Source: Octopus bimaculoides
Taxonomy: Eukaryota
Direction: 5' to 3'
Assembly (NCBI RefSeq): GCF_001194135.2
Contig: NC_068985.1
Span: forward strand, 26,347,604 to 26,402,149
Length of the DNA: 54,546 bases
Shown: positions 29,401-32,597 of the stretch, piece by piece
Layout of the letters: each line of letters begins with the position of its first letter
How positions within the stretch are numbered: position 1 is the stretch's first letter
Made by a program: the position numbers and the translations under genes
Notes under the pieces: model-generated
What the model saw: only the letters and a program-made list of their open reading frames with translations
What the model was told of the DNA's origin: nothing
Database searches by the model: none

Positions 29401-32400
29401 TTTCTGAGGTTGAAGACCTTGTTTTGGATGGGCTCTTGCTTGTTCTGGTTGAACCCATTGATGTCAATGATTAACATTCTTATAGAGTACCCACTTTTCA
29501 TCACTGTCACGAGGCAGTTCAAAAATGGAAGATTTTATTTTTCAAGTGAATAAAGACCAATGCAGATATTGACATGTTCTCTAAGATTGTTTTCAATCAG
29601 TTCATGTGGAGCTTACTTGCCAAGCTTAGACATGGTCCCAAGTTCTTACAAATGGTAATGATGAATTAACCCATTCTGCTAACTCTTCAACAGTTCCATT
29701 TGGATTTCTTCCAGTAGCAGCTTTCAATACATCATTACCAAGAGACAGGGCACTCAGAGCAGCATGCATCTTCCAAGCTAAAGTCCCCTTGTCGAAATTT
29801 ATGGAACCATCATTGGCACTTGCAGATTTTCAAAACACCTTCACCATACACTTCTTGCACATTTTTTTTTTTTTATGGCATTTGTTGCTTTTTTCATACT
29901 CGTAAAGCATGACGTGTCTAATGTGCTCTGCTGTGACCTCCATTTTCATGAGGGTCTATTAAAGCAACAAATTGTTACTTGTGTGTCTGCAAGCTAGAAT
30001 CTAACCAACTGAGACTTTCCTTGCTCTGTGGTATTTATGCACCCATGAAAATATCTTGTTTAAACAGGTTTTAACAAGTACAATCTGAAAAACAAGATAA
30101 CTTATAAGAAGACTTGTATATAGCTTTGTATGTTAAAAGTTTTCACTAACATGTTTTCTGTTTTTCTTTTCCAGTTTTTGGTCGACTGTAGTAGCATTCC
30201 TTCAATGCCTTCTGTAACCTTCACTTTAGGTGGTAAAAATTTCATTTTGACTGCCAAAGATTATGTACTTAAGGTAAGTCAAATTTTGTAATACCTGTGT
30301 GTGTGTGTGTGTGTGTGTGTGTGTGTGTGTGTATCAAATCTCATCTAATGTCCACTTTTTCATATTTGGATGGGTCAGTCAGAATTTGTTGAAGCTAGTT
30401 TTCTGTAACCTGATGGCTAGATAGATATTTTTTCATGGAAGACTGGAAATGGACAGCATGCTTGTTTATAACCATCATGCATTGTCAAGACAAAGGTACA
30501 CATAATCACATGTACATGACTTCTTTCAGTTTCTGTCTATCATATCTAACAAGATTTTGTTGGCTCAGAGCTGTAACAGAAGACGCTTAAGTTGCTGCAT
30601 AGCAGGACTGAACCGAAGACCATCTGGTTGGGAAACAAGCTTCTTAACCACATGGCCATGCTTGCACCTTATCTCCTTTTCAGCAAGACACCTGTCCCTC
30701 TATCATATTTTCATCTCCCTCGATACTATACTCTGTTCAGCTGAGAAACCTTGTCTTGTGAGTACTTGGTGACCTTACATGGAAAAAGCTTCCTGTAAAG
30801 TAGTTGGCATTAGGAAAGGCATCCATCTATAGAAACTTCCAATGCAGATAATGGAGCTAGCATAGTCCTCTAACTTGACAGATTCTACATTATTTACATT
30901 TGACAGATATTTGTCGTCATCTTGTTTGTTGTTAACACAATGTTTCAGCTGATACACCCTCTAGCTTTCGTCAGGTGTTTTGGGGAAATTTCAAACCTGG
31001 GTTCTCATTCCTAAGGTATTTTTCGATGTTATTATTATTATCATTATTCAGATCACTGCCTGGAATCTGGAATCAAACTCGGAATCTTGGGGTTAGTAGC
31101 CCATGCTCTTAACCACTATGGGCATATGGCATAATGGTTAAGATTCCGAGTTTGATTCCAGGCAGTGACCTGAATAATAACATAGAAAAATACCTTAGGA
31201 ATGAGAACCCAGATTCAAAATTTCCCCAAGACACCTGATGAAGGCTGGAGGGTATATCAGCTGAAATGTTGTGTTAAACAAGATGAGGACAACTATTCGT
31301 CAAATGTAAATAATGTACATAATTCCTCATCTCTTAGAACTGTATTGACAGATTCTGTTGCCAGCATGGAAAGTGGACATTAAATGATAATGATATATAA
31401 AAACATGCACTTAAGTTCCCTTAATATTTTTGAAAAATTTGTCAGAATGTTTTTTTTTTTTTTAAACGAATATTTCAGGTAAATTCAATGGGACAAGTTG
31501 TCTGCTTGAGTGGTTTCATGGGAATTGACATTCCAAAGCCAGCTGGACCCCTTTGGATTCTTGGGGATGTATTTCTAGGACCAAACTATGCTGAATTTGA
31601 TCTCCAGAATAACCGGGTGGGGTTTGCAAAGTCAAGGAGCTAAAAGGAAAGATCTGTTTATATTTTGTGTGCACTTATAGTGGGTTCATCTTTTAGTGTC
31701 TTCTTTTCCCCCCACTCCCTCTACTTGCTTTGCTTCTCTGTTGAAGTTTCAAATAGTTTGTAGGTTTCTTTTGTAGTTGCATGCTTGGTTAACCTGCATG
31801 AGAACTTTTCCTTCAGTTTCATTAAATCTGTCAAACTGTACCAGTATTATTTTTCTTCATAACATTATACATTCTGGGGGGTTTCAAATTAATCCAAGTC
31901 CCCACTCCCCATCAGCTCTATGGTATATTAAAGAAGTATTGAGATTACAAAGTTTTTTGTACTTGAATGTTAAATGAGTTAACAATTCGAGTTGTGAAAG
32001 TGTAACAATTTTTTTCCCTCTCCCAAGTGTACCTAATTACATATTATCACGGCTCTTCCAAAGAGCTGCTTATATGCATTAAAACAAAATTTAATCTAGA
32101 AGGGTGGAATATTGAAAAAATTATTTAGCAGCATGGATCATCTCATTCTTCCTGTTTTGCTTTATCTGAATATTGCTTTGGTGTTTTCATTTTGCATGTA
32201 TCTTTTTAGATATTAATATCATCTCTTAAAAAAAAAATTTTAATGGCTTTTTAATTTTAAAATAACCTCCATTAATGCACTATCATTTATTTCTTACCAT
32301 ACTTCCATCCTTTTAAAATTCCATTCAACTTTTAATTTTCTCTTTTTTTAGCCATTTTGTAATATATATAATATATACTAGTTTTAATTACTTTAAATTA

Positions 32401-32597
32401 TTACTCATCAATGTGGACGTGCCATTATCTCGCAGGTAACTCAAGCTGGACAGACAATTTGTTTAAGTGGCTTTATGGGAATTGACATTCCTCCTCCTGC
32501 AGGGCCACTGTGGATATTGGGAGATGTTTTTATTGGAAAATATTACACAACATTTGATGCTAAAGATGACCGAGTTGGTTTTGCTCCTAGTAAATAA
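8359..32597 (+). CDS. CTSD: Cathepsin D-like lysosomal aspartic protease, multi-exon gene with two alternative terminal exons
   Basis: Exons 8359-8420, 17696-17831, 21122-21245, 22773-22891, 23957-24156, 24410-24532, 25797-25938, 30175-30273, then 31479-31643 (9A) or 32436-32597 (9B). All junctions are GT-AG and in phase, giving 1170 or 1167 nt (389 or 388 aa). The protein has a signal peptide, a propeptide, two catalytic DTG motifs, the flap Tyr (HYGSGS) and the C-terminal ILGDVF motif. Confidence 0.95.
10545..10616. other. 72-nt hairpin, pre-miRNA-like dimensions
   Basis: 30-bp stem (10545-10574 / 10587-10616) with two G-U pairs and one A-A mismatch on the + strand; 12-nt loop. Confidence 0.5.
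15250..15532. repeat. Fold-back inverted repeat (about 134-bp arms) carrying two variant hammerhead-like motifs
   Basis: Arms 15250-15383 and 15399-15532 with a 15-nt spacer; motifs at 15331-15381 (-) and 15401-15451 (+). Confidence 0.8.
15401..15451 (+). ncRNA. Hammerhead-like motif with G3:C8 covariant core
   Basis: Stem I TTTGTCA/TGACAAA, core GTGAACA, extra G, imperfect stem II, GAAA, palindromic stem III AATATT and H17=U. Confidence 0.5.
16547..16980 (+). mobile_element. tRNA-derived SINE, family A (spans an N gap)
   Basis: Head GGAGTGGCTGTGGTAAG, central (TA)/(TG) microsatellite and tail ...GAATAAGTCCTGGGG..CTCCAGCATAGCCACAGTCAAATGAGTGAAACAAGTAAAAG. Related copies lie near 22240-22600, 33630-34259, 38990-39170 and 49398-49657. 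Confidence 0.8.
16593..16743. other. Assembly gap
   Basis: N run. Confidence 1.
17696..17831 (+). CDS. CTSD: Cathepsin D exon 2 (propeptide [10 protein letters not shown]...PEPLSNYLD)
   Basis: Pyrimidine tract plus CAG acceptor; A1 propeptide motif and PEPLSNYLD; donor GTAAAT. Confidence 0.92.
19323..19913. other. Assembly gap (within cathepsin D intron 2)
   Basis: N run. Confidence 1.
20610..20857. mobile_element. MITE, hAT-like termini
   Basis: Degenerate inverted termini CAGTGGTGGATGCAGG ... CCTGGATCCCCCCTTG; no target-site duplication resolved. Confidence 0.45.
21122..21245 (+). CDS. CTSD: Cathepsin D exon 3 (first catalytic Asp, FDTGSSNLW)
   Basis: Translates as [41 protein letters not shown]; DTG at 21182-21190; donor GTAAGT. 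Confidence 0.97.
22773..22891 (+). CDS. CTSD: Cathepsin D exon 4 (flap region)
   Basis: Translates as [39 protein letters not shown]; includes the conserved NGT glycosylation sequon; AG/GT flanks. Confidence 0.96.
23706..23925. mobile_element. piggyBac-like MITE, family D
   Basis: Ends in GGG|TTAA. Internal sequence AGAATGACATTGTAGGGTAGGTGTG is shared with copies near 13230-13370, 21310-21500 and 40306-40520 (TTAA|CCCTTTAGC...GGG). Confidence 0.6.
23957..24156 (+). CDS. CTSD: Cathepsin D exon 5
   Basis: Translates as [36 protein letters not shown]...VFSFYINR; AG/GT flanks. Confidence 0.97.
24410..24532 (+). CDS. CTSD: Cathepsin D exon 6
   Basis: Translates as [40 protein letters not shown]; NMT sequon; AG/GT flanks. 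Confidence 0.96.
25797..25938 (+). CDS. CTSD: Cathepsin D exon 7 (second catalytic Asp, IADTGTS)
   Basis: Translates as [47 protein letters not shown]; DTG at 25849-25857. Confidence 0.97.
27392..27670. mobile_element. hAT (Charlie-like) MITE
   Basis: 16-bp TIR CAGGGGCTTTCAAACT / AGTTTGAAAACCCCTG (15/16 match); 8-bp target duplication TCCTAAGG / CCCTAAGG. Confidence 0.88.
28868..30118 (-). mobile_element. Near full-length decayed mariner transposon
   Basis: Pseudo-ORF 29943 to 28943 gives [63 protein letters not shown] and [11 protein letters not shown], with many stops and frameshifts. Degenerate TIRs with TA flanks; about 1.25 kb. Confidence 0.92.
30175..30273 (+). CDS. CTSD: Cathepsin D exon 8
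   Basis: Translates as [33 protein letters not shown]; branch-point-like CACTAAC near 30144; donor AAG|GTAAGT. Confidence 0.96.
30887..31344. mobile_element. Head-to-head pair of tRNA-headed, hammerhead-containing SINE-like units inserted as one block
   Basis: 12-bp direct repeat TTGACAGATTCT at 30875-30886 and 31345-31356. The arms are inverted about 31120, with A/B-box-like heads at the centre and hammerhead-like motifs at 30934-30979 (-) and 31230-31275 (+). Confidence 0.8.
31230..31275 (+). ncRNA. Minimal type I hammerhead ribozyme-like motif (Penelope-type)
   Basis: Stem I GACAC/GTGTT, core CTGATGA, one extra A, stem II GGCTG/CAGCT, GAAA, loopless stem III and a GUU triplet. Activity is untested. 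Confidence 0.65.
31479..31643 (+). CDS. CTSD: Cathepsin D proximal terminal exon 9A
   Basis: Translates as [54 protein letters not shown]; T-rich tract plus CAG acceptor; phase 0 with exon 8. Confidence 0.9.
32436..32597 (+). CDS. CTSD: Cathepsin D distal terminal exon 9B
   Basis: Translates as [53 protein letters not shown]; CAG acceptor; phase 0; AATAAA at 32721-32726. Confidence 0.92.

Follow-up and report, generated by a model that had tools for sequence, protein, structure and literature searches.

Two homologous, putatively alternative terminal exons in the cathepsin D gene of Octopus bimaculoides

Introduction

Can one cathepsin D gene provide two proteases by exchanging nothing but its last exon? 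The question is raised by a stretch of 54,546 nucleotides from Octopus bimaculoides (contig NC_068985.1 of RefSeq assembly GCF_001194135.2, positions 26,347,604 to 26,402,149 of the forward strand), referred to here as the window, in which exon 8 of a cathepsin D gene is followed by two tandem versions of exon 9, designated 9A and 9B. A first-pass annotation had proposed that an old duplication of this exon was kept by purifying selection, so that one gene would make two proteases with different substrate-cleft regions, and had left open whether the arrangement was already annotated. It is: the products of both 9A and 9B have been public in RefSeq and UniProt for years, as isoforms X1 and X2, respectively. 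Beyond the annotation, we consider it highly probable that the single exon-8 donor chooses between the two homologous copies of the ninth exon and that two full-length aspartic proteases result.

Results

A single gene with a duplicated last exon

A tblastn comparison with cathepsin D revealed a single gene of this type ("lysosomal aspartic protease") on the + strand of the window, with nine coding-exon positions. The numbering of the human query sequence matches the published positions Pro376-378 (PMC5736985) and Ile320 (PMC9773328). Exons 2 to 8 were each matched once in the 54.5-kb window, the last exon twice. The two terminal copies align with the C-terminus of cathepsin D with E values of about 1e-18 to 1e-23, far beyond chance. 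AG/GT splice boundaries were found at all mapped exons from 1 to 8. The features are as follows, exons 2 to 7 having been located by tblastn and splice-site mapping:

8359..8420, + strand: coding part of exon 1, with ATG, a 20-residue signal peptide and 2 nt of an Arg codon; donor AG/gtaagc; gives the exact N-terminus of the two RefSeq isoforms (P0121, P0001)
17696..17831, + strand: exon 2, propeptide
21122..21245, + strand: exon 3, first catalytic motif DTGSS
22773..22891, + strand: exon 4
23957..24156, + strand: exon 5
24410..24532, + strand: exon 6
25797..25938, + strand: exon 7, second catalytic motif DTGTS
30175..30273, + strand: exon 8, the last constitutive exon; ends ...DYVLK (GTA CTT AAG/gtaagt), phase 0; sole donor for either terminal exon
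31479..31643, + strand: coding part of terminal exon 9A, 54 amino acids plus TAA (165 nt); acceptor ...atatttcag, phase 0; isoform X1, 389 amino acids
31644..32435, + strand: interval of 792 bp between 9A and 9B; 3′ untranslated region (UTR) of 9A or, if 9B is used, distal part of an intron 8 of 2,162 nt
32436..32597, + strand: coding part of terminal exon 9B, 53 amino acids plus TAA (162 nt); acceptor ...tctcgcag, phase 0; isoform X2, 388 amino acids
32593..32726, + strand: start of the 9B 3′ UTR; AATAAA at 32593 (overlapping the stop codon) and at 32721, ATTAAA at 32625

Runs of N mark assembly gaps at 16593-16743, 19323-19913, 33182-33341 and 50492-51327. Because two of them fall inside introns 1 and 2, the lengths of these introns are approximate.

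With the same acceptor phase, a similar length and one shared donor at 30273, 9A and 9B are probably alternative last exons derived from a tandem exon duplication. The first-pass annotation had described two complete last exons, each with its own acceptor, phase 0 and stop codon, and its boundaries, from the first base of 9A (31479) to the last base of the 9B stop codon (32597), proved exact. The two copies also differ in their downstream hexamers. Only the variant ATTAAA is present 3′ of 9A (31821, 31927 and 32078 in the interval, the last two being kept in O. sinensis), whereas the canonical AATAAA is found 3′ of 9B. These hexamers may act as putative poly(A) signals, in a sequence so rich in A+T that chance hexamers are expected.

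Both products are cathepsin D and are annotated

Translation of exons 1 to 8 joined to 9A is identical in every residue to XP_014771655.1 (P0121; UniProt A0A0L8HLK8), which is isoform X1. In XP_014771656.1 (P0001; UniProt A0A0L8HKK8), isoform X2, the first 336 residues equal those of X1 and are followed by the exact 9B peptide. The proposal of one gene for two proteases thus agrees with existing database entries, and only the last exon is duplicated.

Pfam domain PF00026 covers positions 1-314 of 315 in both isoforms, scoring 401.9 bits with 9A and 404.5 bits with 9B. The top four matches in the Protein Data Bank are cathepsin D structures (E 1e-136 to 1e-140), while renin and pepsin match more weakly. 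In an alignment of 40 sequences, D87/T88/G89 and D273/T274/G275 are invariant. By these sequence matches the gene is assigned to the cathepsin D subgroup of peptidase family A1 (pepsin family). Over the last 53 residues, the AlphaFold2 models of the two isoforms agree in secondary structure: three short strands lead into the proline loop, which is followed by another strand, a short helix and a beta-hairpin at the end. Predicted confidence over this segment is likewise similar (pLDDT about 84/79/88/92/90 versus 85/81/87/92/94).

The cleft wall is shared, the centre of the proline loop is not

At 36 of 53 aligned positions 9A and 9B carry the same residue, encoded by a different codon in 21 of these 36 cases, and 17 positions differ; nucleotide identity is 65%. 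The earlier counts, as well as the pair DIPKPAGP (9A) and DIPPPAGP (9B) and a second pair of 13-residue peptides, were reproduced. In what follows, exon position n corresponds to residue 357+n of human preprocathepsin D.

Two blocks of 11 residues each, C9-P19 and A22-F32, are identical in both exons. They hold the equivalents of human Met307, Ile311 and Pro312 and of the S1′ residue Ile320 (human cathepsin D numbering; PMC9773328). Moreover, all family-invariant columns of 105 cathepsin D tails are retained in both 9A and 9B. The two exons diverge in the first hairpin (positions 2-4 and 7-8), at 38-39, in the turn of the last beta-hairpin (42-45) and in the C-terminal tail. Position 20, the centre of the proline loop, is Lys in 9A, while 65 of the 105 relatives have Pro and 32 have Ala. 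A complete loop consists of three consecutive prolines (Pro376-378 in human numbering) and separates cathepsin D from pepsin-like or digestive A1 enzymes; the enzymes studied in that work lack all of the loop prolines (PMC5736985). The loop is complete in 9B, whereas 9A, with the two outer prolines only, is a partial match. In addition, 9A has Leu instead of Ile at position 33, and GKYY of 9B is replaced by GPNY at positions 35-36. Here, 9A places Asn where F or Y stands in 104 of the 105 tails, the sole other Asn belonging to the cuttlefish 9A isoform. 9B has oddities of its own with respect to the 105 tails, namely Thr39, Ala42 and Asp44. It is 76% identical to the human cathepsin D tail by tblastn and, in terms of sequence, is the "canonical" vertebrate- or insect-like tail.

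Judged from this alignment, the cleft wall is preserved, and the changes are confined to the centre of the proline loop and to elements further out. The notion that the two exons swap the substrate-cleft region therefore holds for the central proline of the loop but is overstated for the cleft-lining blocks, which are identical down to the S1′ residue. A lysosomal versus digestive division of labour between the isoforms is pure speculation.

Both copies are old and under purifying selection

Orthologues of 9A and 9B follow a single exon 8 in the same order in O. sinensis (locus L001) and in the cuttlefish Acanthosepion pharaonis (locus L002), which brings to three the cephalopod genomes with intact copies of both exons. 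A further 9A-type match is a 51-amino-acid open reading frame (ORF) on another cephalopod contig of the European Nucleotide Archive (ENA; P0233). Nonsynonymous (dN) and synonymous (dS) divergence and the proportion of synonymous differences (pS) were calculated by the Nei-Gojobori method, over 50 codons for the terminal exons. Between octopus and cuttlefish, dN/dS is 0.12-0.16 for 9A (dN 0.13) and about 0.07 for 9B (dN 0.09). Since dN of the constitutive exons 2 to 8 amounts to 0.23 in the same comparison, the protein sequence of the terminal exons has diverged less than that of the constitutive ones.

Comparison of 9A with 9B within a species shows saturation at synonymous sites (pS 0.75-0.89). 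In a neighbour-joining (NJ) tree of the 50-residue exon peptides, the cephalopod 9A sequences form a clade with 86% and the 9B sequences one with 55% bootstrap support. The separate clades indicate that the duplication is older than the split between octopus and cuttlefish and that purifying selection has acted on the two exons ever since. Selection on an old duplicate, as assumed in the first-pass annotation, is thereby borne out, with dN/dS values of 0.07-0.16 rather than near 1. The 9A-specific residues S3, M4, L33, P35 and N36 are kept across octopus, cuttlefish and the third cephalopod contig, and octopus and cuttlefish have the 9A acceptor aatatttcag in common.

In the comparison of O. 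bimaculoides with O. sinensis, the constitutive exons show a high dN/dS of 0.56 overall; the propeptide exon 2 reaches about 1.6 and exon 8 about 1.0, albeit from small counts. The noncoding alignment of these two species resolved no regulatory elements; with introns about 85-95% identical, the species are too close.

Duplicated terminal exons across Mollusca

Annotated isoform pairs that split exactly at the boundary of exons 8 and 9 were found in ten further species: O. sinensis, A. pharaonis, the chiton Liolophura, Patella vulgata, Ostrea edulis, Pecten, Ylistrum, two Mytilus species and the nemertean Lineus. At the genomic level, tandem terminal exons are present in all seven molluscs inspected (three cephalopods, Patella, Mytilus, Liolophura and Ostrea), the chiton locus having been reached via Liolophura isoform X1 (P0129). 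Every mollusc copy starts in phase 0 behind an AG acceptor and ends its frame with a stop codon of its own. Among the genomic loci examined, only one terminal exon is present in the coral Pocillopora, in the beetle Tribolium and in the nemertean Tubulanus. In Tubulanus, a candidate relic of a second exon (locus L008, 12339-12398, E 0.75) was discarded, as its translation is a short chance match.

The case of Lineus is based on three annotated isoforms of L. longissimus (P0018, P0134 and P0133), which differ only in the last exon; look-ups of the genomic locus for P0018 and P0134, like one for Liolophura isoform X2 (P0025), gave no record. The proline loop of isoform X3 is two residues shorter (EVPAGP), as in corals and amphioxus. 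Mytilus edulis has three tandem terminal exons (locus L004, 13229-13402, 14540-14728 and 16619-16789). Copies 1 and 2 differ by an unsaturated pS of 0.36, yet only 36 of 50 residues are identical; this pS may point to a more recent event or to gene conversion. Some deposited ab initio models from Mytilus (P0008, P0139 and P0147; 439-444 amino acids) join two copies, so that the C-terminal segment appears twice in the protein; these fusions are almost certainly artefacts of gene prediction.

Positions 3-4 distinguish the copies by rank. The upstream copy has a residue other than Gln followed by a hydrophobic one (SM, EM, EF, KF or AL) in seven of seven mollusc genomes, whereas downstream copies combine Gln with a small or polar residue (QA, QQ, QS or QR); single-exon species show the mixed form QM. 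The motif GP-x-Y was rejected as a marker of the 9A lineage, since it is widespread (corals, amphioxus, rotifers) and also occurs in downstream Mytilus copies. Deep nodes of the NJ exon tree reach 0-34% support, and only shallow clades are resolved. Because 50 residues are too few, a single duplication in molluscs cannot be told from several. The consistent pattern at positions 3-4 would speak for a single origin, whereas the unsaturated divergence of Mytilus copies 1 and 2 would argue against a simple version of it. Hence, we can only tentatively entertain the idea, for which the chances are less than even, that one duplicated-exon module arose before the molluscan radiation (>500 million years ago) and supplies two versions of cathepsin D across Mollusca and perhaps in some nemerteans. 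If it had one origin and a lasting functional division, for example between an intracellular lysosomal enzyme and one that is secreted or digestive, the module would represent a deeply conserved and so far undescribed way of producing isozymes of an A1 protease by alternative homologous terminal exons.

Sequence context of the locus

In intron 8, a long (GT)n microsatellite (30297-30345) starts about 25 nt past the exon-8 donor, and a near-perfect palindrome of 432 nt (30886-31317) lies 162 nt upstream of the 9A acceptor, with a predicted RNA hairpin of −268 kcal/mol. In O. sinensis the palindrome occupies the corresponding position (L001, 25057-25510). It occurs neither in the cuttlefish locus nor elsewhere in the window and is probably a foldback or MITE-like insertion.

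Directly downstream of cathepsin D, a gene with an Sdh5 domain (PF03937) is located on the opposite strand in octopus (L001, 27933-32827), cuttlefish (L002, 48469-52539) and chiton (locus L005, 18281-23708), a case of conserved microsynteny. The region from about 33.3 to 38.3 kb of the window aligns to the Sdh5 region of O. sinensis at 83-92% identity. Further downstream, an ORF of 133 amino acids (43667-44068, + strand) resembles the CENP-B N-terminal DNA-binding domain (PF04218) only weakly and below threshold (E 0.0035); it is probably a decayed fragment of a pogo/Tigger-type transposase. Cross-matches to the O. sinensis flank uncovered a dispersed repeat of about 200 nt in both orientations, at 16753-16983, 22239-22601, 33640-34257, 38085-38330 and 49395-49660. 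Next to one of the assembly gaps lies a GC-rich, tRNA-like stretch (32915-33180), but an ARAGORN scan of positions 30000 to 34000 of the window detected no tRNA.

Discussion

How would the octopus gene use its two last exons? In one type of transcript, the exon-8 donor (30273) would join the 9A acceptor (31479), translation would end at 31643 and the transcript would presumably end at one of the downstream ATTAAA hexamers (31821, 31927 or 32078). In the other, the same donor would join the 9B acceptor (32436), so that 9A is removed within the 2.16-kb intron, translation ends at 32597 and polyadenylation might occur at the AATAAA of 32593 or 32721. Because 9A and 9B each carry their own stop codon, one protein can hold only one copy. 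The predicted products would share residues 1-336 and continue with alternative tails, the choice being one of alternative-last-exon usage. Both isoforms are likely to be expressed and active, and the difference between 9A and 9B may tune prime-side specificity, stability or handling of the enzyme.

Several observations weigh against this picture. All cephalopod cDNAs and transcript-sized assemblies recovered are of the 9B type, namely the deposited cDNA-derived entries Sepiella ARB18030 and Todarodes Q76EJ2 and the Logan contigs P0126-P0128 and P0010; this would weakly favour 9B as the major form, with 9A being minor or restricted to certain tissues. A translated fragment spanning the exon 8-9A junction was not found among 5.8 billion proteins, the sole 9A-type match being the genomic ORF P0233, an absence that says little because the clusters of O. 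bimaculoides and O. sinensis hold only NCBI entries. Support for 9A use comes indirectly, from its presence in automated annotation models (RefSeq X1, UniProt and the cuttlefish model). Finally, five nonsynonymous and two synonymous changes separate the 9A exons of the two Octopus species, which corresponds to a dN/dS of 0.74, albeit from tiny counts. What speaks indirectly for 9A, apart from the models, is a conservation that would be hard to explain otherwise.

Even if both exons are used, the selected difference might be regulatory, residing in 3′ UTRs that affect stability, localisation or translation, or it might concern sorting by the tail, with catalytic specificity essentially equal. 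The identity of the cleft-facing blocks including Ile320 (PMC9773328) is in line with this explanation, as are the AlphaFold2 models, in which most differences lie in the hairpin turn, the start of a strand and the tail; moreover, 9A and 9B necessarily bring along different 3′ UTRs. However, amino acids specific to 9A would not need to be conserved for so long if the UTR alone mattered, and the exons do differ in the centre of the proline loop, a marker of cathepsin D versus pepsin-like digestive enzymes (PMC5736985). We judge a purely regulatory or sorting difference to be unlikely.

Less probable still is that only 9B works and that 9A is a relic duplicate caught by the annotation for its open frame and good acceptor, any 9A transcripts being splicing noise. 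The 9B-type nature of all transcript-derived cephalopod sequences and the lack of exon 8-9A fragments in the protein search would fit such a relic, and so would odd residues at near-invariant positions (Asn for F/Y, Leu for Ile). An unused exon, however, would hardly stay open, keep its AG acceptor, hold a dN/dS of 0.12-0.16 between octopus and cuttlefish and change less than the constitutive exons in dN, and the unusual residues of 9A are themselves the ones conserved in three cephalopods.

That 9B belongs to a separate downstream paralog, or that the pair reflects a collapsed or expanded haplotype in a draft assembly with gaps such as that at 33182-33341, can practically be dismissed, as 9B lies only 792 bp from 9A, no other cathepsin D exons exist in the window and none between 31644 and 32435, the two exons share just 65% of their nucleotides and are saturated at synonymous sites, six other molluscs have the same arrangement in independent assemblies, and the next gene called in relatives is the Sdh5-domain gene on the opposite strand.

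Two functional enzymes from one gene thus remain our preferred reading. In kind, the feature is ordinary: it belongs to the well-known tandem-duplicated alternative exons, here in terminal position, and changes no general concept. Full-text literature searches turned up no cathepsin D for which alternative terminal exons are described. The pan-molluscan breadth (seven molluscs, in addition to three isoforms in a nemertean) appears to be undescribed in the literature searched and is the only part with some novelty. The arrangement offers a cheap route to two isozymes, in which the last 53 residues of a two-lobed protease are swapped without gene duplication, and it was kept across the split between octopus and cuttlefish. 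For work on octopus digestion and aquaculture, it means that cathepsin D is present in Octopus in two forms and that assays or primers directed at the C-terminus detect one isoform only. A paper from 2025 found no cathepsin D in the genome or transcriptome of Octopus maya (PMC12032550). Given a clear cathepsin D gene in O. bimaculoides, O. sinensis/vulgaris and Argonauta, this absence is surprising and worth re-checking.

Among known systems, the vertebrate CTSD gene is similar in layout. Its boundary between exons 8 and 9 falls at the equivalent residue (human ...TLK/VSQ, octopus ...VLK/V), and its nine coding exons presumably correspond to those of the octopus gene. Vertebrate CTSD is not known to have a duplicated last exon. 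In arthropods, cathepsin D diversified through separate genes, as in the digestive enzymes of Musca and lobster. Diversification of cathepsin D-like enzymes in this phylum proceeded by whole-gene duplication, and it resembles the octopus case in that variation partly concerns the proline loop, which the A1 peptidases of Rhodnius lack (PMC5736985). Unlike the octopus pair, which swaps only the last 53 residues and retains two of three prolines in 9A, the arthropod enzymes are encoded by separate genes, differ throughout and often have no loop prolines.

The exons themselves recall tandem duplicated exon substitution and mutually exclusive homologous exons, surveyed for human genes (PMC8373072, PMC9741552), in that they are adjacent, of the same phase and nearly equal length, ancient and under purifying selection, and in that the isoforms match everywhere outside one homologous segment. 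Classical mutually exclusive exons, however, are internal, and exclusivity is enforced by splice-site incompatibility, RNA structure or nonsense-mediated decay, whereas the octopus copies are terminal and, having their own stop codons and presumably their own poly(A) sites, are automatically exclusive at the protein level. They also resemble alternative last exons that are selected when splicing competes with cleavage/polyadenylation, for example those regulated by ELAV/Hu proteins (PMC8055025), where one donor is joined either to a proximal or to a distal terminal exon and each of these brings a separate 3′ end. Typical alternative last exons encode unrelated C-termini or truncations, whereas the octopus pair encodes homologous versions of the same part of a structural domain.

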